DNA of 64,000 nucleotides from Scyliorhinus canicula (Eukaryota). This document shows positions 2,397 to 55,905 of this stretch, piece by piece (the first letter of the stretch is position 1; every line of letters starts with the position of its first letter). The notes below the pieces were generated by a model. It saw only the letters and a list, made by a program, of their open reading frames with translations, made no database searches and was not told where the DNA came from. The translations under genes and the position numbers were made by a program. The stretch spans positions 94,040,493 through 94,104,492 of the forward strand of contig NC_052160.1 of assembly GCF_902713615.1 (NCBI RefSeq). Direction: 5' to 3'.

Positions 2397-3840
2397 TCAC
2401 AAGAAATAGAAGCAGGAGTATGCCACCAGGCCCTTCAAGCCTGCCCTGTCATTCAATATGATCTATTCCGGCCTCAACTCGTTTTCTGTGCCATTTCCCC
2501 ACAAACCTCTATTCCTCGATCAAATATTTATTTACCTCCACTTCAAATAGTTCTAATGATCCAGCCTCCAACCCCCTCTGGGGCAGAGAATTCCAGAGAC
2601 TCGGCATCTTCTGCCAGAAGAAATTTCTATGCTCTTCCGTTTTAAATGACCTGGCCTTTTTCTTGTAGTTCTGTCCCCTTGTTCGAGACCCTCCCACTAG
2701 TGAAAACATCTCACCATCTACCCTATCAAATCCCCTCAGGGTCCTCTCCATTTGAATAGGGTTACCCCTCACTCGTCTCCAAGGAATATAGACTCAGACT
2801 ATTTTATCTCTCTTGATAGGTTAACTCTCTCTCAGGAATTAGCCTGGTGAATCTTCTTTGGACTACCTCCAATGTTACTATGTCCTTTTTTAGGTAAGGG
2901 GATGAAAACTGTATGCAGTATTCCAGGCCTCACCAACACCCTGTACAATTGCAACAAAGCCTCCCTATTTTTAAACTCCAACCACTTTGCAATAAAGGCC
3001 AAAGTGCCATTTGCCTTCTTACCCATCTGTTGGACCTGCGTTCTAGTTTTTTTGTGATTCATGTAGAACATTTAGATCCCTATGTACTTCTCTCACCTGC
3101 AGTCTCTCTCAATTTAGATAATAATCTGCCTTTTGATTCCTCCTCCTGCAGTGCATGACCTCACATTCCCCACATTAAACTCCATTTGCCAGGTTTTCGC
3201 TCAGTCACCCAATCTATCTGTATCCTATTGCAGAATCACAATATCCTCATCACATCATGCCCTTCCACCTATTTTTGTATTGGCAAATTTGGAAACCATA
3301 CATTCTGTTCCTTTATCTAGGTCATTAATGTAACTAGTGAAACATTGCGGGCAAAGAACTGATCCCTGCAGTACTCCACAGTTGCATATTTCCACTCTGA
3401 GAATGGCCCATTCATTCCAAATCTGTTTTCTATATGACATCCAGTTTTCAATCCATGTTAATATACTTCCAATTCCATGGGTTTTTATATTATACAGCAG
3501 CCTCTTTTGTGGCACCTTGTCAAATGCCTTTTGGAAATCTAAATACACTACATCTACAGGTTCCCCTCTATCCACTCTTTCTGTTACATCCTCCAAGAAT
3601 TTGAGCAAATTTGTCAAACATGGTTTACCTTTTATAAAATCATGTTGACTAGATTTGATTATATTCAGCTTTCCAAAATGATTAGCTATTTCCTCTTTGA
3701 TTATTGACTCTAGCATCTTGCCAATAATAGATGTTAAACTAACTGGTCTATAGTTTCCTGCTTTCTGTCTTTCTCCCTTTTTGAACAAGGGGGCACATTA
3801 GCTTTTGCCAATCTTCCGGTACCCTCCTGGAATTGAGTGA
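2397..3840 (-). mobile_element. 5'-truncated CR1 LINE: RT domain and 3' UTR
   Basis: ORF 3255-3788 has NYRPVSLTSIIGKMLESII, VDVVYLDFQKAFDKVP and GVLQGSVL; C-terminal WNSLP motif in 2509-2772; frameshifted. Confidence 0.92.
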
Positions 3841-6514: not shown

Positions 6515-7206
6515 GGGCGGGATTCTCCCGCACCCGGCGGAGCGGGGGGTCCTGGCAGGACGGAGTGGCGTGAACCACTCCGGCGTCAGCCCGCCCCCCG
6601 CACCTTCAGGGGCTAGGCCGGCGCCGGAGTGGTTTGCGCCCCGCCGGCCTGCGTGGAAGGCCTTTGGCACCTCGCCAGCCGGGGCCAAAGGGACTCCACC
6701 AGCTGACGCAGGGCGCGCATGCGCAGAAGCGTCAGCGTCTGCTGACGTCATCCCCGCGCATGCGCGGGGGGGGGTTCACCTTTGCGCCGGCCATCGTGGA
6801 GGCTTACACGGCTGGCGCAGAGGAATAGAGTGCCCCCAAGGCACAGGCCCGCGCACGGATCTGTGGGCCCCGATTGCAGGCCAGGCCACCGTGGGGGCAT
6901 CCCCCGGGGCCAGATCGCCCTGCACCCCCCCAAGGACCTCAGAGCCCACCCGCACCGCCAGGTCCCGCCGGTGAGGGACCTCATCTAATTTCTGCCCGCG
7001 GGACCTGCATTGAATGAGCAGGACTTCGGCCCATCGCGGGCCGGAGAATCGCCGGGGTGGCCGCTTCCAGCGGCTACCGACAGGCGTGGCGCGATTCCCG
7101 CCCCGCCAAATCTCTGGCGCCAGAGAATTCGGCAGCTAGCGGGGGCAGGATTCACGCCGCCACGTGGCGATTCTCCGACCCGGCAGGGGGTCGGAGAATC
7201 CCGCCC
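6515..7206. mobile_element. Complete Harbinger-type MITE with CAT TSD, inserted in a CR1 tail
   Basis: Perfect 14-bp TIR gggcgggattctcc / ggagaatcccgccc; CAT at 6512-6514 and 7207-7209; removing it restores aagaacataagatttaggag. Confidence 0.9.
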
Positions 7207-17035: not shown

Positions 17036-17718
17036 TATGCTACCATGCCATCCATAGAATGGGTAGAATGAGGCAGCTCAAGTACTTTTAGTATGGGTTA
17101 AAAAACAGGTAACCTTGAGGAGAATAACACTGATCTGAGGCCCGCAGTGAAAGGTTGTCTTATGAACCCAGTTGGCACCAGCCCCGGCTGCACACTGTTA
17201 AAAAGAACACAGGTTTACCTGCTGTCCACTGTATTAAAGATACAGTCTCAGGCTGTCACCAAAAAAGTAAATTTATTTGAATGTGAACTTGAGATGCAGG
17301 AATTCTCTTCCCCAGCCCTAGATGAAAACCAGCCACAACCCACACCCTCCACCCGATCACTGCCTCACCCCATCCAGGTCGTCTTCTTACTCGGTGTCTC
17401 TCCACCATCACCATTCTCCATTGCAACAGTTTCCTTTTAAATAACATACCTGAGAGTTACTGCTGACGACGCAGTGACCCAAAAGTATAAAGTCCCCTTT
17501 ACCAGTGAGCTGCCGGGAGATGCCCATCAGGAATTGGCACCTTGCCCATCTTCTGTAAGTTTGGCCCAGAGACTAAACTCGGGTGCACCTCAGGCCTAAC
17601 AGTTCAGGTGTAGGGACTGTTCCCCATGGTCATTGGGCAAGTTTATATTTAGTTTGAAAATACAATACTTTGTCAGAAGCCATTAAAACAAATCTGGGAA
17701 AACTAACAAACTGGTCAG

Positions 17719-18034
17719 TGTGTTGTTACTCGTGTCTTAATAAAGCTCGTAGTCTCAAGTGTGGAGAAGATGCTTTATTGTGAGTTCGTTCAGTTTCCAG
17801 AGCTCGACCTAGAACGACCTTCCAGTGCTAACTACCAGCTTTGCTTGCTGTGTGTGTGTCCTGCTTACCAGCCCGCCTGCTGTGAAGTGTGTCTTGTGTA
17901 TATGTGTTGCTCCAAGTTCTGCCCTCAGTGAAGTGTGTCCTCACTTCCTGTCCTGATCTATTTATATGGCTCTCCCGTGCTCCCTCTAGTGGTTGCTCAG
18001 TTGTGTTGCATCTGGTTAACTTGTGATCACCACA
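17719..18034 (-). repeat. 3' LTR (316 bp)
   Basis: Identical to 21537-21852 except gagttcg versus gagtttg; on the minus strand it has ATATAAAT and AATAAA. Confidence 0.95.
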
Positions 18035-18435
18035 TCCCCCTTTTTCTCTTAACATATTTTCTGTACATCGTTAAAGAAAATTGTACATCCTGTCCCGGTG
18101 TATTTGTAGCTCTCCCTCTGGTGTTTGCTCAGTTGTTTTGTATCTAGTAAATCTACGATCACCCCATCCCCCTTTTTCTCTTTACATATTTGCTGTACAT
18201 CGTTAAAGAAAATTATAGAAAACAGTTACTTATGATATGCGTATCTATACAGGTGATGGTGCTATTGCATACTGTACAAAGCCAATGTAGTTATATGTCC
18301 AATCTCAATAAAACATTTATGAGTCCAAACTTGATGAATTTGTTCAGAGCTTTTTTTTTTTTTTTGTGTTGTTGATGACGTGGTGATATTGATATTGCAA
18401 GTCCGCTGTGAATGTTGTTGGTGTTCCTTGTTATT

Positions 18436-21400
18436 TTAAGTACCCAATGCATCATCCCGAGGTGTTTGCATGGTCACCTCACTGATGTTGACTGGCATGG
18501 ACTTTTTTCTGTGCTTGTGGTGTTGATTTATTGTCTCATCCGCCTTGGATGCTGGTGTGCTTGCTCGTTCTGGAGCAGACGTGTGTTTATGCGATTCGTC
18601 GTCATCCCATGACATGTTTGTGGTCTTGTCATCGTTTTGCCATGCGCTGTGGCATTGTCCGTCATGTGCCAAGTAGTACCATTGTGTACAAGTCGTTGTT
18701 TCATTGCTGTTGTCTCTGTCGTTCCTGTTTTTGTTGTTTTCGTTGCCGTACTTGTTGCTGTTTTTGTCGTTTCTGTCTTTGGTGTTGGCAGTGTCGTTGT
18801 TCCTGACTTTGTTGTTTTCGTTGCCGTTCGTGTTGCTGTTTTTGTCATTTCTGTCTTTGGTGTTGTCGCTATCTTTGTTCCTGACTTTGTTGTTTGTCTT
18901 GTCGCGCTTCATGTTGCTTTTGTTCTTTCTGTTGTCGTTCTCGTTTCTGCTGTGCTTCTTGCTATTGTTGTTGGTCTTGTCACGCTTCATGTTGCTTTTG
19001 TTCTTGCTGTGTTTCTTTTGACTTTTGTTTTTTTTGTTATACTCTATGAGTGTCCCAAGTGGATAATTTGAGTCATTGAGCATTTCGTCTCGAGAGTGGT
19101 GCGAATGATCTGATGTTGCATCGGTGCAGGTGACCTCAATCATTTGTGGAGAATTGGATTCCTCATCTTTGCTTTCTTGGTGCTCCTCTTCCGGAGTCAA
19201 ATTCTTCTCGATTTCATTTGACGCGGTGTCTCTGGATTCTTGGCGCTCCTCTTCTGGAGTCAAAACCTCCATGATTACAATTGACGTGATGTCTGTGGAC
19301 TCCTGGCGCTCCTCTTCTGGAGTTGAAATCTGCATGATTTCAGTTGACGTGGTGTCTGTGGACTCCTGGTGCTCCGCTTCTGGAGTTGAAATCTTCATGA
19401 TTTCCGTTGATGTTATCTCACTGGACTCCAGGTGCTCCTCTTCTGGAGTCAAAATCTGCATGGTTTCTTCTGGCTTGGTCTCTCTGGACTCCAGGTGCTC
19501 CTCGTCTGGAGTCAGAATCTGCATGGTGTCTTTTGGCTTGGTCTCTCTGGACTCCAGGTGCTCCTCTTCTGGAGTCAAAATCTGCATGGTTTCTTTTGGC
19601 ATCGTCGCTCTGGACTGTTGGGTGGCCCGACTCTGTGCTTCTGTACAGACAAGCTGAGAACTGTCAGTCTCGCTGTGATCCTGTACGTCGAGTGCGATCA
19701 CCTTGTTACTGTTCTCGCATGCAGTGGGTAGAGGTGCATTGTCTTCTTCTTGTTCATGTGAGCTTGTTAGACTTTCATAGTCTGCTTGCGGTTGCTCAGA
19801 TACTGCGGGTTTACCTGCATGGTCTTGTTCATGCATGGTGTTCGCCAGGGAGTGTTTGCTTGCATCCCTTTTGGAGTCTTTCATTACTCGCACTGTGGAG
19901 CCTGTCATCGCTCGCTCTGTGGAGTCTTCCTGTGCTCTCTGTGTGGCGTCGTCTTCGTCTTGGGTATTGCTGTCATCCAATGTATCGACGAGCTGCCATG
20001 GCCTCATGGTGTTGGATTCATCTACCATGAGTAGAGTCGTGCTGAGCTTTGCAACGGTGTCGCTGATGCTGTGATCAGCATGTCCAAATAACTCCTCCAT
20101 GTCTGAGTAGTATTCTTTGATACCCATTTCATCTTCGTTGGCTTCTTCTACCACGAGTTGATTTGTGTTGAAGTTTGCGACCGTGTCGCTGATGCTGTGA
20201 GAAGCATATCCGACTGACTCAGCTGTGTCTGAGTAGTATTCTTCGAAAAACAAATCATCCTGGTTGGATTCTTCTACCACGAGTTGATTCGTGTTGAACT
20301 TTGCGACCGTGTCGCTGATGCTGTGAGAAGCATATCCGACTGACTCAGCTGTGTCTGAGTAGTATTCTTCGAAAAACAAATCATCTTTTGTTGTTTCGGA
20401 ATTCTTTTTGTTCTCTTCACTTTGGGTGGTGCAGACTGCTTTTTTCAGGGTGTTGTGCAAGTTGTTTTTAACTGTTGGTGTAAGTTCAGTCGTTTTTCTG
20501 TGTTCTGAGGCAAGAACATTTGTGTTTACCACTTTAAGTGTCTTATTTTCAATTTTCGGGCATTTCCCTTTTAAGTGGGCGTGGTCGGGATGCTCAGACG
20601 TCATGACGTCACGCGTTGGCATGACTTGCGCATGTGCAAATAGGCTTTTGTCCTTCACTGTGCGGTTTCGTTCCCATTGCGCATGCGCGGCTTGCGCATG
20701 CGCATGACGATCCGCGACGACGACTTTTTTTGACTGCGCATGCGCGGCTTGCGCATGCGCATAACAATCGGCGCTGCGATCTTTTTCAAACTGCGCATGC
20801 GCGGCTTCCGGTTCCGGCGCATGCGCAGACGCGATTTGTAGTTCTTTGCTTACCGGAGACTGCAAAATGTGCTCCAACGCCATTTTTTGTCGTTTTTCGC
20901 GGATTTCAGCGATTTTACTGTCCCACCAGGACTGCAAAATTCGTAAGTGATCTTCTCTTCCCGATTTGGACAGGGTTTCAGCGTTTTGGCTTTGTGAGAA
21001 ATTCTTTTTATTTCTTCTTTTTGATCTGTACTTTTCATTCGCGATTTCTTGCTCTTTTGGTGATTTTTTAAGTTTTGCATCACTCAGTCTCTGTGCAGTT
21101 TGGCCTCTGAGTATGTCTTGCTGTTCAAATTTCTCACAGTACTCTTCAAATTTGTTTAGTACCGTTTGTAAGCTGTTTCTGTCTTCACCTTTTGAGTATT
21201 TAAATCCATTATAAACTTTCCAAGCTTCATTTTCTTCGATGAGAATTGCTATTTTAATTTCGTCTGAGGCTGCCGCTGCATCATATGCTATGATAGCGAA
21301 ATCGAACATTTGTTTAAACCTTTCCCAGACACTTCTTACTTTTCCAGTCGTGTCCAGGTGAAGTGGGAATCCAAGGCACATCCTCTCATCAGCAATGTCT

Positions 21401-21462
21401 TCCCAAGTCGAATGTCCAGCAGGAGATCTCCATGCCATTCTTGGTTGAGATTTCCATGCCAT
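18436..21462 (-). CDS. 1008-aa Gag-derived protein: Gypsy Gag N-terminal domain, degenerate zinc knuckle, acidic 42-aa and 21-aa repeats, N/K-rich 26-aa repeats
   Basis: Uninterrupted ORF filling the LTR interior; PLHLDTTGKVRSVWERFKQMF...IKIAIL...VLNKFEEYCE resembles Gypsy Gag N-termini; no pol motifs. Confidence 0.8.
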   Translation of the reverse strand: MAWKSQPRMAWRSPAGHSTWEDIADERMCLGFPLHLDTTGKVRSVWERFKQMFDFAIIAYDAAAASDEIKIAILIEENEAWKVYNGFKYSKGEDRNSLQTVLNKFEEYCEKFEQQDILRGQTAQRLSDAKLKKSPKEQEIANEKYRSKRRNKKNFSQSQNAETLSKSGREDHLRILQSWWDSKIAEIREKRQKMALEHILQSPVSKELQIASAHAPEPEAAHAQFEKDRSADCYAHAQAAHAQSKKVVVADRHAHAQAAHAQWERNRTVKDKSLFAHAQVMPTRDVMTSEHPDHAHLKGKCPKIENKTLKVVNTNVLASEHRKTTELTPTVKNNLHNTLKKAVCTTQSEENKKNSETTKDDLFFEEYYSDTAESVGYASHSISDTVAKFNTNQLVVEESNQDDLFFEEYYSDTAESVGYASHSISDTVANFNTNQLVVEEANEDEMGIKEYYSDMEELFGHADHSISDTVAKLSTTLLMVDESNTMRPWQLVDTLDDSNTQDEDDATQRAQEDSTERAMTGSTVRVMKDSKRDASKHSLANTMHEQDHAGKPAVSEQPQADYESLTSSHEQEEDNAPLPTACENSNKVIALDVQDHSETDSSQLVCTEAQSRATQQSRATMPKETMQILTPEEEHLESRETKPKDTMQILTPDEEHLESRETKPEETMQILTPEEEHLESSEITSTEIMKISTPEAEHQESTDTTSTEIMQISTPEEERQESTDITSIVIMEVLTPEEERQESRDTASNEIEKNLTPEEEHQESKDEESNSPQMIEVTCTDATSDHSHHSRDEMLNDSNYPLGTLIEYNKKNKSQKKHSKNKSNMKRDKTNNNSKKHSRNENDNRKNKSNMKRDKTNNKVRNKDSDNTKDRNDKNSNTNGNENNKVRNNDTANTKDRNDKNSNKYGNENNKNRNDRDNSNETTTCTQWYYLAHDGQCHSAWQNDDKTTNMSWDDDESHKHTSAPERASTPASKADETINQHHKHRKKSMPVNISEVTMQTPRDDALGT

Positions 21463-21521
21463 TTTTGTTTTTTTGTTTTCTGTATCTGCAGCTGAGTTGT
21501 CCTGTCATAAGCGTCTGAAAT

Positions 21522-21536
21522 CACTCCTAGGTACCA
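21522..21536 (-). promoter_or_regulatory. Primer-binding site, tRNA-Leu(UAA)-like
   Basis: TGGTACCTAGGAGTG matches the complement of the tRNA-Leu(UAA) 3' end (TGGTACCAGGAGTG) with one extra T; tRNA sequence recalled, not searched. Confidence 0.7.
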
Positions 21537-21852
21537 TGTGTTGTTACTCGTGTCTTAATAAAGCTCGTAGTCTCAAGTGTGGAGAAGATGCTTTATTGTG
21601 AGTTTGTTCAGTTTCCAGAGCTCGACCTAGAACGACCTTCCAGTGCTAACTACCAGCTTTGCTTGCTGTGTGTGTGTCCTGCTTACCAGCCCGCCTGCTG
21701 TGAAGTGTGTCTTGTGTATATGTGTTGCTCCAAGTTCTGCCCTCAGTGAAGTGTGTCCTCACTTCCTGTCCTGATCTATTTATATGGCTCTCCCGTGCTC
21801 CCTCTAGTGGTTGCTCAGTTGTGTTGCATCTGGTTAACTTGTGATCACCACA
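21537..21852 (-). repeat. 5' LTR (316 bp)
   Basis: Direct repeat of 17719-18034, immediately followed on the minus strand by the PBS. Confidence 0.95.
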
Positions 21853-23305
21853 GTCAGATATAAGAAACCCATGAAGTATTACACTTCACATGTTACTCTG
21901 GCCCACTTGCAAATTTCTGCGTAACAGAAAAGAAGAATGGCAGTCAGACCCTTCATTGGTTTGCATCGTGTTACATGAGATCCAATCACACAGACTGCAC
22001 CAAGTTATAAAACAGTGGTTCTACATTCCACTGGCATCAAATCCTTTTAAATATCAATGGAAAAGCTGAACTCAGAGAACCAAACTATTTACAATGGACA
22101 TTAGCATCTCACACTCCAGATCCACCAGGAAACTGTTGAGAACTTAACTCCTGATCGCTAATCAGTCAAGTAGCAGAATTCAGTTAGTGGAGCTCGTATT
22201 GCTAATTTCCATGTTCCAGTGACCCGGATTACCTTGTCTCCTAGACATGAAGAGAATTTTCATCGCCTTGTGGCCTCTCGGACTTGGGGGTGCTGCTCAG
22301 TCTGTTCACCAACGTGCATGTCCGCCTCATTTCCTCTTCTCACTGTCCCTCCACCATCCAAGTTGCCCAGTTTGTAACCTTGTTAATATCCATGCTCCAA
22401 CTCACATGTCCTGGGCTTCTGCTCCTGTCTCCTCCTGCTGCCACACTCTCTCTCTTCATGGCATCTCATTCTCCATCCAACCGCCCTCCTTGCCCCGCAC
22501 TACCTCTCCCCCCTCTCCCCACCTCTCTTCCCCTCTCCACACAGCTCTCTCCCCGCCTCGCCCCCACCCTCTCTTATGGTGGGGTGGGGGTCTTTGGTGG
22601 GGGTCTCTGTAATTGAGCGGTCTCTAGTGGGGGGTCTCTCATGGGGGTCTCTGTTAGGAAGGGGTCTCTGTATTTGGGTGGTCTGTGGTGGGGTCTCCCT
22701 CACGGGGAGTGTCTGATGAGGGGCAATGGGGGGAAGTCTGGTTGTGGTGGGGGAGGGTGGCCCTTCGGTGGACTTGGGGCAATTCCCTTAAAGAGTTACC
22801 CCAAAGGTCCACCGCGAGGTGCACCGCATCAGGATCACATTGACACCAATTCTCGCCCACGTGAATCCCGGCCCACAGGACCAGAGAATCAGGCGGGCTT
22901 GAACAATACGGTGCCCGGCCCGTGAATAACTTGGGGCGCGAACCCTGAAACCACTGCTAGCGGGGGACCATAGAATCGGAATGGAATGTGCGACTGACAC
23001 TGAATTCTCTGCCGCATCGGGAACTCCGTTACCGGTGGCGGAGAATCCAACCCTGAGTGTTGCTGCTGAGGCTGAATAGCAGGCGGTTCGCATTCCTGAT
23101 GGGATGTGCTCCAAGAGGGAGCGTTATTCGGAAAGCAATTCAGGACATGCAAATGGGTCAGCACTCTGCGCATGTGAATTGAGAGCTATTCACATTTCTT
23201 ATGGCATCTGATTTACTGGGGACGGAATTAGCGCTGGAGAGCCTGACAAGCTGGAGCTGCATGTACGCACTCCATTCCCCACACGCTCTCATTCCTTCCA
23301 AGAAA

Positions 23306-25270: not shown

Positions 25271-26074
25271 ATTAGAAAGTTAGACACCACTTAAGTTGGC
25301 ACGGGTGTAGCACATAGGTGATAGTTAGGGGTCTGGGCACAACAGTGTATATAGTCACCAGTAAACACTTTTGCACCAACATTCAGGCTTGTCTCTATCC
25401 TCTGTGTTCGGGATGGGCTGGGGCTGAGGGTAGAGGGTGTGCTGCGTGGGGGTGGGGGGGGGTAGGTTGGAGGGCGGTGTTGGGGACAATGGGTGTTTGG
25501 TTCGGGTGGGGGCTGGAGGATGGAGTTGAGCAGGACCCCATGACACTTGAACGTCCCACCTGAGGTCACCCTGAGTGAGAGGTGGCAGGAAACGGGGCCA
25601 GAAGTGTGAGGTTGCCTTGCATGACAACAAACCCAGTGAGTGAACCCTAACCACTCACCAGATCCAGAAGCCCCACCCCCAATACCCCCCTCCCCCCCCC
25701 CCCCCAAAGGATATCTGGACCAATGGATTGGTCAGTGCACATGCAGGGATAACCCAGGCGGACAGTGAAAGGTGATCCTAAAGGCAGGAGTCAGACTTTG
25801 TCAAACGATGAGGAGCACCAGAGATCATCTCACAGCGAGTCATAATTATCCTCCATCCCATGGACAAGACACACTCCATACTGTCAACATGGGGCCAACA
25901 TTCTGTGGTGATGCTGGTAGGACCCTGGGAGAGAGAAGGGGAGCTGGGGTGGTGTGATAGAGTGATGGGCTGTAGGTCAGGAAGGATGAAGTGAAGAGAG
26001 GCGGGATAGGGAAGGTGGAGCGAAAGGCTGTGTGACAGGGAAGGTGTGAGCGGGTATGGGGAAGGGGCTTCCAT

Positions 26075-27280
26075 TTGGAAGGGTGGGAGAAATGGAGAGG
26101 TGTGACAGGACAGCGGAGCTGCCAGTGGCCAGTTCTCATATTTGGAAAATCAGGAGATAATGAAGTTGTCCCGTGTATGGCACCCCTGGAGCACACATTG
26201 GGCAGCCTGCCCTGCCAGCCCAGGTTCCACTCCCGATTCTTCCTAGGCACCCTCCTCATCCTCCTCCTGCTCTTCTTACTTCTCCTGCAGCAAGTCCCCC
26301 CTGTGCTGCACGATGTGTGCAGGGCACAGCAGGTCAGCACGATGTTAGAGACCCTCCTGGGGCTATATTGCAGCAACCCCTCGGAACTAGCCAGGCATCG
26401 AAAGCGCATTTTTAGGACGCCGATACACCGCTCAGCGATGCTTCTGATTGCTGCATCGGTGTGGTTGTAATGGATCTCATTGATCTGGTCCTTCGGACAG
26501 GCATCATTAGCCATGACCTCAGCAGATAACATCGTTGCCCAAGAGGAAGCACCTTGAATGTGCCGGGAACCTCAGAGTGCGCCAGGATGTCAGCGTCTTG
26601 CACGCTCCCTGGGTAACAGGCACAGATGTGCACGATGTACAGCTGGTGGTCATAGAGCAACTGCACATTTACGGAGTGGAACTTCTTCCTATTGGTGAAG
26701 GACATCCCCTAATGGGCTGATGCTCGTAGGGGGACATGCTTGCCATCAATCACCTCCAGACCTGGGGCATGCCAGCGATGGCGACAAATCCTTCTGCTTG
26801 GGCATCCTGTGTGCCTGAAGGTAATATAGTCTGCTGCCCAGATACATAGGTCCTCCGTGACAGCACGGATGCACCTGTGTGCGGATATTTGCAAGATCCC
26901 ATCCCAGACAGGTCTCCGTTCAGCCCCTCGAAAGACACAGAAGTATAAAGGTTCAGGGCGGCGATCACTCTAATGGTCACCTAGAGTGGGTGCCCTCCTA
27001 CAAAACCCTGCGGTGTCAGATGCGCCACCATTTGGCACAGTCCTCGAAGGAAAGGCGCCAACGGTATATACATGCCCTTACATGGCGCCTCCTTCGTACC
27101 TCCTCCTCGGTTTGTTGCATGGCCGGCACTTGCGCCTCACCAGCTGGACCCTGTTCCCCTGAGGCAGGCCCCTCTTATGCAGGGTCATCCCTGAGCTGGT
27201 CCTGTTCCTCCAGCCTCCGTGCCTCTGCAATGGCAGCTGCGGCCAGGTAGATAGTGAGCATAGCTGGCTGCATTCCAAAA
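26075..27280 (-). pseudogene. PIF/Harbinger DDE transposase (HARBI1-like), frameshifted
   Basis: Motifs IRVIAALNLY, VIDGKHVPLRA, FTNRKKFHSVNVQLLYD, YPGSVQDADIL and YNHTDAAIRSIAERCIGVLKMRFRCL across several frames. Confidence 0.9.
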
Positions 27281-34459: not shown

Positions 34460-35700
34460 AAGGACACGATTCAATGGATAGACCTCAAAGTGTGATTTAA
34501 GCCTGTTTGGTGGGGTGTTTGCGACAGCAGCAATGGTGAGATGGAGACCGCTATTCAACGGCACTTGGCCTTTTTTGGGGGGCCTGAGAAAGTTTCTCCC
34601 CGGTCAAGGCCACATTATGAAATTTTTCCAGCACTGGGGAGCTGAACTCCCAGCAGGACCAGCTCCTCCAAGATCGGGGTGCCACTTTGAAAGGTTGCTC
34701 CGATCTCTACACCCCTCCCAGTTTCAGGACCCCTCCCCCCCTTCAGCCCCTTCATTCCCTTCCTCACCACCACTTCATGGACATTGCTCTCTCAGCCCTT
34801 GGCAGTGCCAACCTGGCACTTGGGCACCTTAGTACTGCCAGCCGGGATGCCTGGAAGCGTCCCTCCAGCCCTTGAGGAAGCCACACTGGCCAGTGCCACG
34901 GATCTCGGCCGTGTGTGGCGGTGCTGGACACAGTCCGCAGCCGCCACACTGGGTTCACGACCGCTGAGACCACACGTGTTCCGCGCCCTCGGGAACTTTG
35001 GCAGGGCATTGCAGGAGTGACTGCCAATGACACTCCAATGCCATTGCAATGACGCGCGATGCAATGACTCAATTTCAGAGGGGTAGGAGAACGGCTGACC
35101 AGCGTCAAACCACTGCCGGCCTCGATTTGGGCATCAGGGACCATTCTCTGCCCGGGGCGAGATTCTTCGTAGCCAAAAGCCCAAATTGTGATTGGCGATT
35201 GGGCGAAGAATGGATTCCCACACTGAAATCGGGGCCGTCGCCATTTTCACGCCGGTCCGCCATGCTCCGCCCTCTCCAAAATGGCATCATAGCTCCGTTT
35301 CAGCACCGTTGGCACGTCATTGGCCAGCCCACCTGTGATGATCCGCCCCGATGGGCTGAGTCCCCGACGGTGCGGAACACGTGTGGTCCCGACCATGCGG
35401 AAACCCGGAATTCTGGTTGCGGACAGTTCCCAGCGCCGCAACACTCGGCCGGTATCCATGCCGCTGGCCGGGGTGCTTCTGCTGGGGCTGGGGGTGGGCT
35501 GTGGGATCACGGTTGATGGATTGCATTCGCACACGACCGGTGCCACGTTGAAGGGCGCGACAGGTGCAGATCGTCAACCATGCGCATGCGCTGCCTGGGA
35601 CCCGGGCATTCTGAGATCGCTTTCGGTGCGACCCGCGGGTGTTTCACTCGGTGCTGGTGTTAGCCCCTCACCGGTACATGTGTGGTCATGGAAATCCACA
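34460..35700. mobile_element. Nested GC-rich MITE fragments
   Basis: Segments shared with other MITEs in the window; TIR-like ggacacgattc and ggggcgagattc. Confidence 0.5.
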
Positions 35701-46881: not shown

Positions 46882-47952
46882 TGCGAGGGAGGGCAAATTG
46901 TAATTAAGAGTTGGCACTTCATGGCTAGATACCAAACGCAATGCTTTTCATCCTAACTGATAATAGCCGTGCATGTATTCGCACCAGAACAATAATAAAA
47001 TGGTCGGGAATAATCATGATTAATGCTTTCCAGCAGCCTTCATCTGCTGTAAGGTGACAATTACAGACCTGTTCCCTCGTTAATGCTGGACAGGAAATGA
47101 TGAATGCCAAATCAGCAGGGCCTTGTAGGCCTTCAAGAAAATACAATAACAACCGAGTCACGGAAGCCTTTAAAGGAGATTCCGGGGGGAATATTCCTTG
47201 ACACAAAGCATTAAGATGAGGAACATTTGAGCAGAAATAATTAATGAAGAGACATTTCAATTAGGTGGAAGGGCACGGGTGAGAGGAAAAGGAGATATTT
47301 ATTTTACATGCTTTAATGAATGTTGTGCTCACTGAGGTGAAGAGAGGTAGACCCAGGAATTGGAATACACCCAGTTTGAACTCGCAGTGTTGGCATCAAG
47401 CACTCACAGGCCAGAGTAAAACTCACTCTATTTAAGAAAAAGATTCATCTCCTTTTTCTCAAATAAGGATGGGAATTAAATGCTGGCCTTGAAAGCCAGC
47501 CTAAACGGTTCAAAAAGCTCTGCCCCAACTCCATTTCTCACCTATTATTTGAGGGAATGGAAATGACTCGGGGTCAAAAGACAGATAAGGGGAGTTCTGT
47601 AGGTGTTTCTAAGCAGCATTTTTCCTATGATGGTAGTAATCGTTGTGGTGGTATGATTTGCATAGCTGTCTGCCATTGGTGCAGAACACCGGCTTACCAT
47701 TGGCCCTGGTCGGTCATGTGCCTCTCGACCGATTGGTTGAGACCAGTCATGTGACGGATCTCTGATTGGTCGAGAGGCTGAGTTAACCACGCCTCCATAC
47801 CGAGGTGTAAATAGTCAGAATGCCGGCGGTCGTCCATTTACTGTAGTCGACTGCAGGGCTAAGTTCTAGCTTATTAAAGCCTAACTTTTGTACAGCAACT
47901 CGTCTCCCGTTCGATTGATGGCTCATCAATTTAATAAGCTAGATTTTTGAAG

Positions 47953-48999
47953 ATGGAGTTCCGGATCAAGCCGGAATGCCTCCGCATCAGCCCGCAAACT
48001 CAGAACGTTTCAGTAATTTTTCAACATTGGCTGGCATGTCTCGAAGGTAGCCTGGAGTCTGCAAACAGCCCCCCCACCATGGCACAGAAGCTTCATGTCC
48101 TCCACTCCAGCATGGGCATAGCAGCCTACGCGATAATCAAGGAAGAGGAAGATTACGATGCGGCCATGCTTAAGCTGAATGGACAGTTTCTTAAACCAGT
48201 CAACAGAGTATTCGCCCGACATCTGCTGGCCACTAGACAACAGCTCCCCGGTGAGTCATTAGACCAATTTTACCAGGCCCTCGCTATCCTGGGCAGGAAT
48301 TGCTCCTGCCCCCAAGTTTCAGTAACGGAGCACATGGAACTGCTGATCAGAGATGCTTACATGGCTGGGATGCAGTCCCCCGCTATCCGCCAGCGGATGC
48401 TGGAGAAAGACGACCTCAGCTTAACTGAGGCACGGACTCTCTCCACCTCCCTGGAGGTCTCCACTATACACGCCCGCGCCTATGTCCCCAGCCGCACTGC
48501 AGCGTCCCGGGCCTCCTGGCACGCTTCTCCACTGCAATCCGCCGCGCCAATCTGCTCCCCCCCCCCCCCCCCCCCGCCGGGCCTTTCCGGGCCCCTCCAG
48601 CGCACCGCGCTAATCTCCCCCCCCCCCCCCCCCCCCCCCCACCGCCGGGCCCCTGCGTCTGGCCTGCGCGCCTCCCCCTCTCCTCTGGGGCCTTCCGGGC
48701 CCTTCCAGCGCACCGCACAACTCTCTCCCCATCCGGCGCCGGGCCCCTGCGCCTGGCCTGCGCACCTACCCCTCTCCTCCGGGGCCTTCCGGGCCCTTCC
48801 AGCGCACCGCGCAACTCTCTCCCCCCCGCCCCCGGGCCTATGCGCCTGGCCTGCGCGCCTCTCGGCCCCCGCTCTCAGCCGCCAAATCGGTTGCTGCTGT
48901 GCCGCGCAGCGACCGGGATCTCCTCAGCCTGGCCTTTCCGGGCCCCGCCAGCGCACCGCGCTAATCTCCCCCTCCCCGCCGCCGGGCCCCTGCGCCTGA
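47953..48999 (+). pseudogene. Gypsy gag; C-terminal part replaced by a GC-rich minisatellite
   Basis: FARHLLATRQQLPGESLDQF, LIRDAYMAGMQSPAIRQRMLE; no CCHC knuckle seen. Confidence 0.85.
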
Positions 49000-49370
49000 C
49001 CTGCGCGCCTCCCCCTCTCCTCCGGGGCCTTCCGGGCCCTTCCAGCGCACCGCACAACTCTCTCCCCATCCGGCGCTGGGCCCCTGCGCCTGGCCTGCGC
49101 ACCTACCCCTCTCCTCCGGGGCCTTCCGGGCCCTTCCAGCGCACCGCGCAACTCTCTCCCCCCCCGCCCCCGGGCCTATGCACCTGGCCTGCGCGCCTCT
49201 CGGCCCACGCTCTCAGCCGCCAAATCGGTTGCTGCTGTGCCGCGCAGCGACCGGGATCTCCTCCGCCGGGCCTTTCCGGGCCCCGCCAGCGCACCGCGCT
49301 AATCTCCCCCCTCCCCGCCGCCGGGCCCCTGCGCCTGGCCTGCAGCCTCTCGGCCCCCGCTCTCAGTCAC
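48540..49370 (+). repeat. Complex GC-rich minisatellite inside gag
   Basis: Repeated modules ccttccgggcccttccagcgcaccgc, gggcccctgcgcctggcctgcgc, ctctcagccgccaaatcggttgctgctg. Confidence 0.9.
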
Positions 49371-49426
49371 TCCGGTCGGCCCGCCGGAACCGCTAACCCC
49401 ACCCCGAGCAACGACGAGGGCTCCAT

Positions 49427-49735
49427 GGCGCCGCCATCTTGGGCCCCGGACGCCACGTGCGGGTCCCGGGCGCCGCCATCTTGGGGCGCCGACTCCACGT
49501 GCGGGTCCTGGGCGCCGCCACCTTGGGGCGCCGACTTCACGTGCGGGTCCTGGGCGCCGCCATCTTGGGGCGCCGACTCCACGTGCGGGTCCCGGGCGCC
49601 GCCATCTTGGGGCGCCGACTCCACGTGCGGGTCCTGGGCGCCGCCATCTTGGGACCCCGAGTCTACGTGCGGGTCCTGGGCGCCGCCATCTTGGGATCCC
49701 GACTCCACGTGCAGATCCTGGGCACCACCTTCCAG
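49427..49735 (+). repeat. 42-bp tandem repeat (~7.5 copies; TCGSWAPPSWGADS)
   Basis: cacgtgc recurs at 49454, 49496 and onward with period 42. Confidence 0.92.
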
Positions 49736-49789
49736 GACTGGCACGCAAGGTTCTTCCAGCACCTACTCGGCCGACGACGACGACTATGG

Positions 49790-52370
49790 ATCTTCTCCAC
49801 GGCTCGCGGCCATTCAGCTCGACCAGTCACGTCCACGCACGCTCGCCAAAACGACAACGCTGATCCACCTCAACGGCCACGAGACGGGCTGCCTGCTGGA
49901 CTCCGGGAGCACGGAAAGCTTCGTTCACCCTGCCACGGTAAGACGCTGCGCGCTCCCTGTCCATCCTGTAAAACACAAAATCGGGTTAGCCTCAGGTTCG
50001 CACTCCGTCCGCATCACCGGCTGCTGCATCGCGGACCTCACGGTCCAAGGGAAGGTTTTTAAAAATTATAAACTCCTTGTCCTCCCTGACCTTTGCGCAC
50101 CGGCACTCCTAGGACTGGACTTCCAGTGCAACCTGCAGAGCTTGACCTTCCAATTTGGCGGTCCTATACCCCCCTCACTGTCTGCAGCCTCGCGTCCCTC
50201 AAAGTGGACCCCCCCCTCCTTGTTTGCTAATCTCACCCCCGATTGCAAACCCGTCGCGACACGGAGCAGACGGTACAGCGCCCAGGACCGGTCCTTCATC
50301 AGGTCCGAGGTCCAGAGGTTACTGAAGGAAGGGGTCATCGAGGGCAGCAACAGTCCCTGGCAAGCCCAAGTGCTGGTGGTCCGGACTGGGGAGAATAACC
50401 GGATGGTCATTGACTATAGCCAGACCATCAACCGGTTTACGCAGCTGGACGCGTATCCTCTCCCCCGTATTTCCGCCATGGTAAACGATATCGCGAAATA
50501 CAAAGTCTTCTCCACTGTGGACCTTAAGTCCGCTTACCACCAGCTCCCCCTCCGCGCGAGTGACCGCAAATACACCGCGTTTGAGGCTGATGGGCGCCTC
50601 TACCACTTCCTTAGGGTTCCATTTGGTGTCACAAATGGGGTCTCGGTCTTCCAACGGGAGATGGACCAAATGGTCGACAAGTATGGATTACGGGCTACCT
50701 TCCCGTATGTTGATAATGTCACCATCTGCGGCCACGATCAGCAGGACCATGACGCCAACCTCCAGAAATTCCTCCAAACCGCAAAACTCCTTAACCTCAC
50801 ATACAATAAGGATAAGTGCGTGTTTAGCACCGACCGTCTAGCCATCCTTGGCTACGTAGTGCGTAAAGAAATGATAGGCCCCGACCACGAACGCATGCGC
50901 CCCCTGATGGAACTCCCTCTCCCCAATACCCTCAAATCCCTTAAACGCTGTCTGGGTTTCTTCGCTTACTACGCCCAATGGGTTCCCAATTACGCTGACA
51001 AGGCCCGTCCCCTCATTCAAACCACGACCTTCCCGCCGTCGACAGAGGCCTGCCAGGCCTTTAGCCGCACCAAAGCGGACATCACAAAGGCCACGATGCA
51101 TGCCATCGACGAGTCCCTCCCCTTCCAGTTAGAGAGCCACGCATCAGAAGTAGCTCTGGCGGCCACCCTGAACCAAGCGGGCAGACCCGTGGCCTTCTCC
51201 AGAACTCTCCAGGCTTCCAAACTCCGCCACCCCTCTGTGGAAAAGGAAGCCCAGGCCATAGTCGAAGTGGTGCGACATTGGAGGCACTATTTGGCCAGCA
51301 GGAGGTTTACCCTCCTCACAGACCAATGGTCAGTAGCCTTCATGTTTGATAATGCACAAAGGGGCAAGATTAAGAATGACAAGATCTTACGGTGGCGGAT
51401 CGAGTTGTCCACGTACAACTACGAGATCTTGTATAGTCCTGAGAAGCTCAATGAGCCTCCTGATGCCCTGTCCCGCGGTACCTGCGCCAGTGCACAGATA
51501 GACCGCCTCCGCTCCCTCCACGCGGACCTCTGCCATCCAGGGGTGACCCGTCTCTGCCATTTCATTGAGGCCCGCAACCTGCCTTTCTCCATCGCGGAAG
51601 TCAGGACAGTAACCCGTGACTGCCACATCTGCGCAGAGTGCAAATTGCACTTCTACCGCCCCGAGTGCGCACACCTGATCAAAGCATCCCGCCCCTTGAA
51701 CGTCTCAGCATTGACTTCAAGGGGCCCCTTCCCTCTAACAACCGCAACATTTACTTCCTGGCGATAATCGACGAATACTCCCGCTTCCCCTTTGCCATTC
51801 CCTGCCCCGGCATGACCACATCGACCGTCATTAAGGCCCTCCTCTCCATCTTCTCCCTGTTCGGATACCCCGCGTACATACATAGCGATGGGGGGTCCTC
51901 ATTTATGAGCGACGAGCTGCGTCAATTCCTGCTCAACAGGGGCATTGCCTCTAGCAGGACGACCAGCTATAACCCTCGGGGTAACGGACAAGTCGAGCGG
52001 GAGAACGGTACCATCTGGAAGACCATACTACTGGCCCTCCAGTCCAGAGATCTCCCTATTTCCCGATGGCAAGAGGTTATCCCCGATGCCCTACATTCTA
52101 TCCGCTCACTCCTTTGTACCGCAACAAATCAGACACCTCATGAATGTCTTCTTGTTTTCCCCTGGAAGTCGCCTTTGGATCCCCTCTCCCGACGTGGCTG
52201 GCCGCCCCTGGACCCATCTTGCTCCGGAAGCATGTGCAGGTTAGCCTCAGCAGGTCCGACCCGTTGGTGGAACAAGTCCAGTTACTCCACGCTAACCCGC
52301 AGTATGCGTACGTGGAGTACCCCGACGGTCGGCAGGACACGGTCTCCCTCTGGGACCTGGCACCCGCCAG
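49790..52370 (+). pseudogene. Gypsy pol (protease, RT, RNase H, integrase), frameshifted in the integrase
   Basis: LLDSGS; RMVIDYS, LDAYPLP, VDLKSAYHQ, VPFGVTNG, YVDN; RNase H EKEAQAIV; HHCC H..LCHPG..CHIC; integrase core SIDFKGP, IHSDGG, GNGQVEREN in the next frame. Confidence 0.92.
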
Positions 52371-53930
52371 CGTGCGGCCTAACCCCCCCCTTCACCACAG
52401 ACCCCCCCTGTTTTTTTTCCCCCAGCGCCCCACCCAGGCCACCCCTTCCCCTATCCATGGCGTCTCCACAGCCAGCTCGGGTGACGGAGACTGTTCAAGG
52501 ACCATCGCTCCAGAGACTCCAGGACGTCAGCAGAACCACCACCATCGGCTGAATCGACGTCACCTCCTCCACTGCGACGGTCTGCCAGGACGTCACGGGC
52601 CACGAAAAGACTGATCGAATCGATTTAAATTACACCAGCTCCATGGACTTTGTTGGGACTTTGTGTAATATTGTTAATTGTCTGGGCCAGTGGGAAGCCA
52701 AAAATGTAATAAAAGAAAATAAGAGAAAACATTTTTTTCCATCTCCCTTCCTCGGCTGCTACTCATACCACCAGTTCTCTTTCCCCCCCCCCCCCCACTT
52801 CCCCCCACCCCCGGCTCTCGTTGGTACCCCCCTCCCCCCGGCTTCTTTCTCCGCAAGGGGTGAATGTGGTGGTATGATTTGCATAGCTGTCTGCCATTGG
52901 TGCAGAACACCGGCTTACCATTGGCCCTGGCCGGTCATGTGCCTCTCGACCGATTGGTGAGACTAGTCATGTGACTGCTCTCCGATTGGTCGAGAGGCTG
53001 AGTTAACCACGCCTCCATACCGAGGTATAAATAGTCAGAACGCCCGGCGGTCGTCCATTTACTGTAGCCGACCGCAGGGCTAAGTTCTAGCTTATTAAAG
53101 CCTAACTTTTGTACAGCAACTCGTCTCCCGTTCGATTGATGGCTCATCAATCGTCATGTCAGTTGTTTTGAAGCGAGCTCCCAATGGGATCTGCTTTGAG
53201 AGTGCATCAGTCCACAGCAGCAGCAGAAAAGCAATCTGGCGTCGTGACAGGAAAAAGACATTTTCACTTTTTGCACAAAATGGAGGTGATGTCGGCAGGG
53301 TAGCTGTGTCACCGATAAAAGCCTCCACTGGGAAACTGGAATCACTTTCAGGCCAGTGCTTCCTATGAGTGCAGCTCACCGGTTGTGAGAAGATGGGAAA
53401 TTGACTGACTCCCAAACTCAGTGAGCCTACAGACTGGGCCTGGAGCAAGAGCGAAGCTGATCACTGAGGAGGCGGAGAGCCTCGGGGGAAGGAGGGGGAG
53501 ACGGGGCCGGGCTGCCTACTGCAGCCCTGCCTCGGTCTTGTGGATATTTTTTAAGTACTATTCAGACCCCAAGGCAATTTTAACTGCCAATGCTGACTTT
53601 TTTAAAAATATTTTTTATTCTCCTCCTTTTTCATATTTTCTCCCAAACTTACACCCAACAATAAACAATAATCAGTAACAAATGTAATGTAGATCCCCAT
53701 ATCAATAACAACAATCCCATCCTCCCACCAAACCCCAGACATTAGCCGCACGTTAACATAAACAAATGACAAAAAGGAATCAGGAATCACCCATAGTCGC
53801 CATCAACACACACAGTCCCTCTCCCCCCAACACTCCCGGCACCCCCCTAATGTTCGATGTGATCCAATTCTCAAAAGTGCATAATGAATTACACCTTCTC
53901 TACATTCGCCGCCCAATAATAATACATCAG

Positions 53931-55605
53931 GGGCAAAATTCTCCGAAGACCTGCGTGACGCCCATTTCCGGCGGCCAAAAGCGGTGCGGATGACTCCGGC
54001 GTTGGGGCCTTCTTTTAAGCCGGTAATCTCCGTTCCCGAAAGGGCCAGCAGTGGACTGACGCGATACGCGTCACTTTCACCCGCTGCGGAAGTGGCGCGT
54101 TGAGAGAGAGAGAGGGGACCCGGCGTTGAGAGGAGAGGAGAGGAGAGGAGGGGGACCCGGCGTTGAGAGGAGAGGAGAGGGGGGGGAACCCGGCGTTGAG
54201 AGGAGAGGAGAGGAGAGGAGAGGGGGGGTACCCGGCGTTGAGAGGAGAGGAGGGGGGACCCGGCGTTGAGAGGGGGGGTTGCGGCATTGAGGGAGGGGGG
54301 TTGCGGCGTTGAGGGGGGGTTGCGGCATTGAGGGGGGGATTGCGGCGTTGATAGGGGGGGGGTTGCGGCGTTGACAGGGGGGGTTGCGGCGTTGAGAGGG
54401 GGGTTGCGGCATTGAGAGGGGGGGTTGCGGCGATGAGAGGGGGGGTTGCGGCGATGAGAGGGGGGGTTGCGGCGTTGAGAGAGAGGGGGGGTGCCGGCGT
54501 TGAGAGAGATGAGGAGGCGGCATTGGAGGGAGGTAGGGGTGGTGGGGAGGGGGGTAGGGGTGGTGAGGGGGGGTTTGGGGTAGGGGGCAGCGGCGTGCAG
54601 AGGCGGGGGGGCGACAGTGCGTTGGCCCCGGCCATCCGTCGGCCCCCCTCTCTGCACGCCGCTGCCCCCTACCCCAACCCCCCCACCACCCCTACCCCCC
54701 TCCAACGCCCCTACCCCCCTAACCACCCCTACCCCCCTCACCACCCCTACCCCCCTCCCCACCAACCCCTATCCCCCTCCCCCACCACCCCTACCCCCCT
54801 CCCCACCACCCCTACCCCCCTCCCCACCACCCCTACCCCCCTCCAATGCCGCAAACCCCCCTCTCAACGCCGCAAACCCCCCCTCTCAACGCCGCTGCCC
54901 CCTCCCTCTCAACGCCGCAACCCCCCCTCAACGCCGCTGCCCCCCTCCCTCTCAACGCCGCAACCCCCCCTCTCAATGCCGCTGCCCCCCACCCCAACCC
55001 CCTACCCCTACCCCCACGCCTACCCCCCCACCCCTACCCACGCCCACTCCCCCCACCCCTACCCCCCCACCCAACCCACCCACCCCCCCACCCCCCACCC
55101 ACCCCCCAAACGCCGGGACTCTCTCTCTCTCTCTCTCCCCCCCTCCCACAAATGCCGGGACTCTCCCCTCCTCCCCCCCCCACGCACGTCGCCCCTCCTC
55201 CCCCCGCACTCGCCCCTCCTCCCCCCCGCACGTCGCCCCTCCTCCCCCCCGCACTGCGCCCCTCCGCCCCCCCCCGCACTCGCCCCTCCTCCCCCCGCCC
55301 TCGCCCCTCCTCCCCCCTCCTCCCCCCCGCACTCGCACCCTCCTCCCCACACCCCTCCCCCTCCCCCCCCGCACTGCCCTCCCCCCCCCCGCACTCGCCC
55401 TTCCTCCCCTCCGCACTCGCCCCTCCTCCCCCCCGCCGCACTCAGCCCCTCCTCCCCCCGCCCTCGCCCCTCCTCCCCCCCTCTCCCCCCCGCACTCGCC
55501 CCTCCTCCCCCCACCCCTCCCCCCCCCCCCCCGCACTCGCCCCTCCCCCCCGCACTCGCCCCTCCTCCCCTCCGCACTCGCCCCTCCTCCCCCCCCCCCG
55601 CCCAC

Positions 55606-55648
<43 letters not shown>

Positions 55649-55905
55649 CACTCGCCCTAGGTCACTGAACGGCGTCAACCATCATCAATGGTTGACGACG
55701 TTTTAAAGCTACTGCGGGCCGGAGATTTGTTGAAAGTAAAAAATCAATGACATCCCGCCGGCGCCAGCTGTTCTCAGAGGCTGCCGGCGGGATTTGCACA
55801 ACGCCGGTTTTTGGCCGCTCGGAGAATAAAAAACCCGGCGGGAGCGGGATTAACGCCGCAGCCGGCCGATTCTCCGACCCTGCGTGGGGTCGGAGAATTT
55901 CGCCC
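53931..55905. mobile_element. Large Harbinger-type MITE with CAG TSD inserted in L1 ORF2, containing a G-rich/C-rich foldback
   Basis: TIR gggcaaaattctccga / tcggagaatttcgccc; CAG at 53928-53930 and 55906-55908; removing it restores the L1 peptide GGLGLPNLMYYYWAANVEK. Confidence 0.9.
54588..54664. mobile_element. 77-bp mini hAT-type element
   Basis: TIR cagcggcgtgcagag / ctctgcacgccgctg; first ~48 nt match the hAT end at 62915. Confidence 0.7.

Follow-up and report, generated by a model that had tools for sequence, protein, structure and literature searches.

LARD-, TRIM-, ETn- and VL30-type elements have complete cis signals, have lost pol, contain no long open reading frame (ORF) and are presumed to be mobilised in trans. 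The TR-GAG elements of Coffea, Arabidopsis, the Triticeae and sugar beet, which have been discussed along with LARD and TRIM elements, combine long terminal repeats (LTRs), a primer-binding site (PBS) and a polypurine tract (PPT) with a single gag-derived ORF and no pol, and are regarded as semi-autonomous elements copied by a partner (PMC13570524). Here, we describe a complete LTR element located at 17719-21852, on the minus strand, of a 64-kb stretch of DNA from the catshark Scyliorhinus canicula (the whole of this stretch is referred to as the window). We show that it is a young, non-autonomous LTR retrotransposon insertion of Ty3/Gypsy descent, with all cis signals and without pol, and that its ORF codes for an intact ancestral N-terminal capsid lobe (N-lobe), without the remainder of the capsid or any zinc knuckle, followed by about 160 residues predicted to be helical and about 730 predicted to be disordered. 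In a vertebrate, this clean anatomy is unusual, and we regard it as of moderate interest. Like the LARD, TRIM, ETn and VL30 types, the element has complete cis signals and no pol; unlike them, it has a 1008-codon ORF that takes up 86% of the interior. With the TR-GAG elements it has in common the LTRs, PBS and PPT, the single ORF and the absence of pol domains. TR-GAG elements, however, are defined by a retained GAG ORF (or GAG/protease domains), recognisable as a whole GAG and usually with a zinc knuckle, whereas the ORF described here consists of the first lobe, of about 82 residues, joined to about 900 non-Gag residues, the homology to Gag ending at residue 111. Moreover, the element is found in a cartilaginous fish, whereas the TR-GAG literature that we found covers plants only. 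An initial annotation of this DNA had already pointed to the Gag-only elements of plants and knew of no such family described in cartilaginous fish; no comparable family from sharks or other cartilaginous fish turned up in the open-access literature, a search outside of which Repbase and Dfam lie.

All of the cis signals listed in the initial annotation, that is, 316-bp LTRs with one mismatch, a GTCAG target-site duplication (TSD), a PBS and a PPT, are present and can be read directly from the sequence (Table 1). The LTRs are identical at 315 of 316 positions (99.7%), the lone mismatch (17787/21605, C versus T) being of the CpG-to-TpG kind; their ends are TG...CA, and GTCAG is found on either flank. 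TATAAA at LTR position 69 and AATAAA at position 256 are matched in both copies, in the usual U3-R-U5 layout, and represent predicted promoter and polyadenylation signals within the LTR. The structural features of an LTR retrotransposon are thus assembled at this locus: direct TG...CA repeats, a TSD of the 4-6-bp class, PBS, PPT and LTR signals. The PBS presumably resembles the 3' end of a tRNA-Leu with one extra base; neither tRNA genes nor Rfam families were detected in the window, which therefore offers no partner for the PBS. From the divergence over twice the substitution rate (K/2µ), at plausible vertebrate rates, the insertion would be about one to a few million years old, an order of magnitude with a wide error, as it is derived from one mismatch in 316 bp and an assumed shark rate. 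An autonomous Ty3/Gypsy element present in the same window (47644-53151, plus strand) has an LTR pair that is only 96.2% identical, and the element at 17719-21852 is therefore the younger insertion of the two. That the family may be active is suggested by the youth of this one copy.

A single ORF was said to fill the interior without any protease (PR), reverse transcriptase (RT), RNase H or integrase (IN) motif, and the analysis agrees. The ORF spans 3027 of the 3502 internal bases, and a Pfam search with the whole of it gave no match at E <= 1, hence no PR, RT, RNase H or IN; the same search detects all four in the neighbouring Gypsy element. Because the interior is just 3.5 kb long and nearly all of it is ORF, there is no room for pol. 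Since there is no pol, neither the domain order PR-RT-RNase H-IN nor an RT phylogeny can be used to classify the element. The exact 1008-aa protein is not on record. The open stretch amounts to 1022 codons, as against a maximum of 186 in 500 composition-matched shuffles of the interior, and the remaining two sense frames contain 40 and 73 stops. An Env-like or membrane reading of the protein was ruled out, as no hydrophobic segment occurs anywhere in it. The start of the ORF (21415-21462) is a tandem 24-bp duplication (MAWKSQPR / MAWRSPAG), which places about 25 residues before Met28, the point at which related Gag proteins start.

The N-terminal region ties the protein to Gag. A phmmer search with residues 1-200 against 1.84 billion representative proteins returned 113 matches at E <= 1e-3 (best 5e-11, 42-45% identity), and in every one of these matches it is query residues ~30-112 that are aligned to the extreme N-terminus of the matched protein. 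The long matches are Gypsy-type Gag-PR-RT-RNase H-integrase polyproteins, four of which (P0003, P0028, P0091 and P0077) carry PR, RVT_1, RT_RNaseH_2, Integrase_H2C2 and rve in the Gypsy order; the named polyprotein relatives come from beetles, ticks and an eel. When a profile was built from 18 Gag N-terminal regions of the polyprotein relatives, hhalign aligned residues 30-111 of the ORF to profile columns 5-88 with 99% probability (E 2.6e-18) and nothing beyond; nor was anything significant found between the Gag profile and residues 112-774 or 775-1008. The gag of the neighbouring Gypsy (47947-48999) matches the same profile over columns 2-181, and therefore has the downstream capsid part that the ORF lacks. 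Two statements of the initial annotation, that only some 80 N-terminal residues look like Gag and that the C-terminal part of the capsid, seen in the neighbouring gag, is missing here, are in line with these alignments. The two proteins are linked solely through the Gag profile, as BLASTP of the ORF against the neighbouring gag gave no match.

Beyond the aligned region, the relatives continue with a Q..GE....F...LR-type motif and then with CCHC knuckles; the ORF has neither. From what is generally known of retroviral and Ty3 capsids, we take this motif to resemble the major homology region that opens the capsid C-terminal lobe (C-lobe). Because the homology stops where the major-homology-like motif begins, we infer that residues 30-111 are a complete N-lobe and not a random stub. 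The family-invariant residues W46, Q51 and A59, as well as the near-invariant ones, are all retained, and the AlphaFold confidence score (pLDDT) is above 90 over residues 40-120. A remnant of the nucleocapsid is at best faint: HLKGKCP lies at about the right distance for the first zinc knuckle of the relatives and is kept in two of the catshark proteins discussed below (P0120 and P0122), and it may, on this weak and post hoc comparison, be a relic of that knuckle. Against PDB sequences the Gag profile gave only a weak match, to the part of a retroviral Gag where the capsid ends and to its nucleocapsid zinc knuckles. Foldseek with the model of residues 1-330 found no significant match in PDB or BFVD, long helices dominating the search; the top PDB entries were MOAP1/PNMA2 capsid-like domains, at a non-significant E of 0.7-3.7. 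In any event, homology to the Gag of elements that carry a Gypsy pol points to a Ty3/Gypsy ancestry.

Table 1. Features of the element and its flanks (window coordinates; LTRs named in the orientation of the element)
Feature	Position	Strand	Basis or remark
TSD GTCAG, left flank	17714..17718	.	identical 5-mer directly outside both LTRs
3' LTR, 316 bp, TG..CA	17719..18034	-	TATAAA 17961-17966, AATAAA 17774-17779
PPT AAGAGAAAAAGGGGGA, abuts 3' LTR	18035..18050	-	sequence read directly
Older internal duplicate: leader, second PPT and first ~55 nt of U3	18112..18217	-	repeat search and pairwise alignment, ~87% identical
Single 1008-aa ORF (stop codon included)	18436..21462	-	ORF list; no Pfam family
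C-terminal motif C-x7-H-x3-C-H (CTQWYYLAHDGQCH)	18649..18690	-	conserved in S. torazame relative (alignment)
About four 78-bp (26-aa) basic Asn/Lys-rich repeats	18718..19029	-	repeat and charge analysis
Seven 63-bp (21-aa) acidic TPEEEH-type repeats	19178..19618	-	fewer copies in relative P0121
Three 126-bp (42-aa) acidic repeats	20011..20388	-	repeat analysis
HLKGKCP, residues 296-302, H-x4-C-P	20557..20577	-	hhalign to knuckle columns, E 0.23, not significant, post hoc
Residues 112-273, predicted long helices, no detectable homologue	20644..21129	-	AlphaFold (AF2); no hhalign match to Gag profile
Six exact GCGCATGCGC palindromes encoding AHAQAAHAQ repeats, 57-bp tandem unit	20679..20826	.	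motif count
Residues 30-111, homologous to Ty3/Gypsy Gag N-terminal capsid lobe	21130..21375	-	phmmer, hhalign, pLDDT
PBS TGGTACCTAGGAGTGATT, TGG-type, abuts 5' LTR	21519..21536	-	sequence read directly
5' LTR, 316 bp	21537..21852	-	TATAAA 21779-21784, AATAAA 21592-21597
TSD GTCAG, right flank	21853..21857	.	identical 5-mer as left

The rest of the protein had been described as disordered and made of low-complexity repeats, and both parts of this description require qualification. Residues 275-1008, about 730 residues or some 73% of the protein, are indeed predicted to be disordered and are of low complexity (pLDDT below 50, no secondary structure), but residues 30-273 are predicted to be helical, with a pLDDT of 85-98. 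The AlphaFold helices cover residues 98-131, 135-159, 166-201, 203-211 and 222-273; over residues 112-273, where the pLDDT is about 85-90, the alignment contained no homologues, which makes this a single-sequence prediction. A basic cluster, KYRSKRRNKKN (21001-21033), and AHAQ repeats lie within residues 112-273. Likewise, tandem arrays do make up much of what follows, in that five of them, with periods of 57, 126, 24, 63 and 78 bp, all divisible by 3, were found, but unique blocks conserved in catshark relatives are present as well; over the whole ORF, the unique blocks are residues 30-111, 286-358, 485-612 and 926-1008. The charge is arranged in blocks, with a net value of about -77 over residues 351-800 and of about +17 over the basic, Asn/Lys-rich residues 801-900. 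The 57-bp array is the most CpG-rich part of the element (observed/expected CpG ratio 1.67) and holds six of the 11 copies of GCGCATGCGC in the window, where 0.03 would be expected; GCGCATGCGC is the NRF1-type palindrome, and may act as a regulatory site here.

A search with residues 340-640 retrieved four annotated proteins in two catshark species, XP_038638339.1 from S. canicula and XP_072360352.1, XP_072360653.1 and XP_072322184.1 from S. torazame, which together are colinear with residues 287-1001 of the ORF at 37-42% identity; the element does therefore belong to a family, as had been proposed, and the matches also bear out the initial guess that the DNA comes from a cartilaginous fish. 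The numbers of repeats differ between the relatives and the ORF, always in frame; the unique blocks that they have in common include the C-terminal C-x7-H-x3-C-H motif, and one relative ends within a few residues of the C-terminus of the ORF. Because the relatives are colinear at about 40% identity and their repeat numbers vary in frame, the non-Gag part of the cargo is best described, at the level of sequence, as an old multi-copy coding family in catsharks and not as junk. In our reading, the four catshark models are remnants of the ORF in copies of this family that are older and have diverged. Could they be host genes, residues ~287-1008 having been transduced from a shark gene, or the catshark genes being domesticated descendants of the element, with a cellular function for the cargo? 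The cargo has relatives only among NCBI gene models for "uncharacterized" proteins (XP_038638339.1, XP_072360352-4, XP_072360653-6 and XP_072322184.1), some of which have several accessions or an "isoform X1" label that hints at transcript support; none has the Gag-like N-terminus, and P0120 and P0122 have a common start and end. However, the gene spans of P0119, P0120 and P0122 exactly fit a single-exon coding sequence (CDS), that of P0121 being 54 bp longer than its CDS; the relatives begin and end at differing points of one colinear template; one locus is nested inside the span of an unrelated oxygenase gene, and another is followed by a further CDS on the same strand. Because of these single-exon spans, varied ends, nested locus and downstream CDS, we regard the models as decayed transposon copies, and an origin of the cargo in a host gene as very unlikely. 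The element itself shows no sign of domestication either: Arc, PNMA/MOAP1 and RTL/SIRH resemble it in their Gag-only coding capacity, but they are fixed host genes without LTRs and have both capsid lobes, whereas it has a single lobe, and its near-identical LTRs and intact TSD denote a recent insertion and not a fixed locus that has lost its LTRs and mobility.

We regard the element as a TR-GAG-like non-autonomous Gypsy derivative, and think it more likely than not that its ORF is kept open because the protein helps the RNA of the element to compete for machinery provided in trans. Protease, RT/RNase H and integrase would be supplied by an autonomous Gypsy located outside the window, and the protein would serve the propagation of the element itself, favouring its RNA in the competition for the helper machinery. 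By the most probable route, the helices would oligomerise, the basic Asn/Lys-rich tail would take over RNA binding from the lost nucleocapsid, and the N-lobe that remains of the capsid would attach the complex to assemblies of helper Gag. A role in promoting or tuning assembly foci is conceivable for the disordered acidic middle, by analogy with the prion-like domain of Ty1 Gag; that domain, which is disordered, is required for retrosome formation and for retrotransposition (10.1101/2023.02.27.530227). The likeness lies in a long disordered segment, Asn-rich or charged, attached to a capsid domain; there is no relation in sequence, and in the shark protein the segment predicted to be disordered is about 730 residues long. 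Under this scheme, selection would act on the openness, the charge pattern and the length of the ORF rather than on its exact sequence.

The neighbouring Gypsy at 47644-53151 was considered as the helper and was ruled out: its LTRs are different and older, it has no TGG-type PBS and its gag is unmatched by BLASTP. The PBS regions of two arthropod-type relatives (L001 and L002) also differ from that of the element and provide no link to a helper.

Several observations weigh against an ORF maintained for the benefit of the element. All four relatives are short fragments of 230-390 aa, none of the four has the Gag-like N-terminus, and word-indexed searches with residues 1-330, among candidates of 554-1764 aa and of 181-577 aa, returned no relatives; a full-length one was not found. 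The 230-aa XP_072360653.1 is followed, after 504 bp and on the same strand, by a 192-aa CDS, as in a broken copy; a frameshift or a stop that divided one family ORF in two would give such a pair. No helper with matching LTR ends or PBS was detected in the window, whose one autonomous Gypsy is a different element, and no second copy or solo LTR of the element occurs within the window. Moreover, the ratio of non-synonymous to synonymous differences (pN/pS) between repeat units is 1.00 for the 63-bp array and 0.96 for the 126-bp array, and the changes are evenly spread over the codon positions, from which we conclude that the repeat sequence itself shows no purifying selection. Finally, the simulation of neutral substitution, in which the three large arrays stayed free of stops about 0.012 of the time, is rough, in that it assumes a star phylogeny of the repeat units and ignores indels. 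Scans of metagenomes, with the LTR-PBS junction and with the protein, detected no copies.

Much of this is what would be expected if the ORF were a passenger, the element being a deletion derivative of the LARD or TR-GAG type that is copied in trans, with an interior filled by minisatellite growth and an unselected leftover ORF that by chance is open in this young copy; the protein, were it produced, would be of no use to the element. The values of pN/pS close to 1, with variable sites even over the codon positions, the predicted disorder and low complexity of about 73% of the protein, the reduction of annotated relatives to short ORF fragments and a T-poor sense strand (16% T), which lowers the frequency of stop codons, are all consistent with it. 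Yet composition alone does not account for the open frame, as the matched shuffles reach at most 186 open codons and the other sense frames are rich in stops; every one of the five repeat periods is divisible by 3; stop-free arrays are rare under neutrality in the simulation; the Gag N-lobe has kept all of its conserved residues; and neutral decay could not leave relatives at about 40% protein identity with colinear ORFs of 230-390 aa. We thus consider an unselected ORF unlikely. In favour of constraint, then, stand the 1022 open codons, the frame-preserving repeat periods and the colinear ORFs kept in the relatives, and these can be reconciled with the lack of purifying selection on the repeats if selection keeps the frame, the length and the charge pattern and not the sequence of residues. 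Selection of this kind is common for disordered regions; it fits the evidence, and does not amount to proof.

Co-assembly, hijacking or restriction by the protein, as raised in the initial annotation, are putative actions. As to restriction, the N-lobe could enter helper particles and the bulky, charged tail could poison them, so that the element, or the host by means of it, would limit the parent Gypsy in a manner comparable to Ty1 p22, Fv1 or enJS56A1. The intact capsid N-lobe, confidently folded in the prediction and fused to about 900 non-Gag residues, would suit such a role, and there are precedents for the restriction of a parent element by a truncated Gag (PMC4599808, PMC8458377). The shark protein is similar to Ty1 p22/p18 in that both are partial Gags encoded by an element, and it could encounter the full-length protein as particles assemble. 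In contrast to p22/p18, however, its Gag part is limited to the N-terminal lobe, no other product is encoded by its pol-less element, and it does not contain the C-terminal capsid region of Gag by which a p22-like protein would bind full-length Gag. Furthermore, an element that depends on a helper would stop its own spread by poisoning it, yet this copy is young and its TSD is clean, and the intact LTRs and TSD give no sign of domestication. Restriction thus fits poorly, and we hold it to be very improbable.

More speculatively, a "satellite" retrotransposon lineage of sharks may have swapped most of Gag for a scaffold of its own making, in which the N-lobe would serve as an adaptor, and the helices and the block-charged disorder would concentrate the element's own RNA in condensates, in parallel with the satellite viruses and phage-inducible islands that redirect a helper capsid. 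The six-GCGCATGCGC array might then act as a second promoter for a Gag-less form starting near codon 282-288; an internal start at this point is proposed because the catshark proteins P0120 and P0122 begin there. We regard this elaboration as rather unlikely.

The comparison with other elements gives the locus its interest, since nearly all descriptions of non-autonomous LTR elements with a retained gag ORF are from plants, and this one is a vertebrate example. What is new is the fusion of a single capsid lobe to a very long, repeat-built disordered protein that is open across diverged members in two catshark species. If the protein is functional, the element would be a natural experiment on which part of Gag suffices to parasitise or interfere with helper assembly, and would test if a disordered, charged scaffold is able to stand in for the capsid C-lobe and the nucleocapsid. 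With LTRs that are 99.7% identical, the element is useful as a marker of LTR mobilisation that is ongoing or very recent.

Just upstream of the 3' LTR, in the orientation of the element, the leader, the PPT and the start of U3 are duplicated (Table 1). The second PPT (18167-18182) is identical to the first, the two polypurine tracts being 132 bp apart. Because the duplicate is only about 87% identical it is older than the insertion, and it may have arisen by an old strand-transfer or recombination event.

Elsewhere in the window, five more exact copies of GCGCATGCGC lie outside the element, a pair at 6715-6765 (6715/6756) and single copies at 35582, 37608 and 38290; the pair flanks a TGACGTCA-like site in a CpG-rich stretch, and by BLAST the outside sites are unrelated to the element. 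The neighbouring autonomous Ty3/Gypsy has LTRs of about 288 bp and an ATCGT TSD; its Gag is followed by PR-RT-RNase H (48840-51767) and integrase (51638-52552), the sequence after its 5' LTR does not start with TGG, and its gag-pol junction (48503-49774) has a GC content of 68%, with 94-bp and 42-bp tandem repeats. Fragments of other mobile elements are found on the minus strand: a reverse-transcriptase ORF fragment at 3255-3788 (RVT_1, E 8e-20) and a DDE_Tnp_4 transposase fragment of the Harbinger/PIF type at 25846-26532 (E 2.6e-10). Lastly, an extremely C-rich low-complexity block at 54400-55700 (GC about 71%), with long C runs and CCCCGCACTCGCCCCTCCTC-like units, yields spurious long ORFs on both strands.

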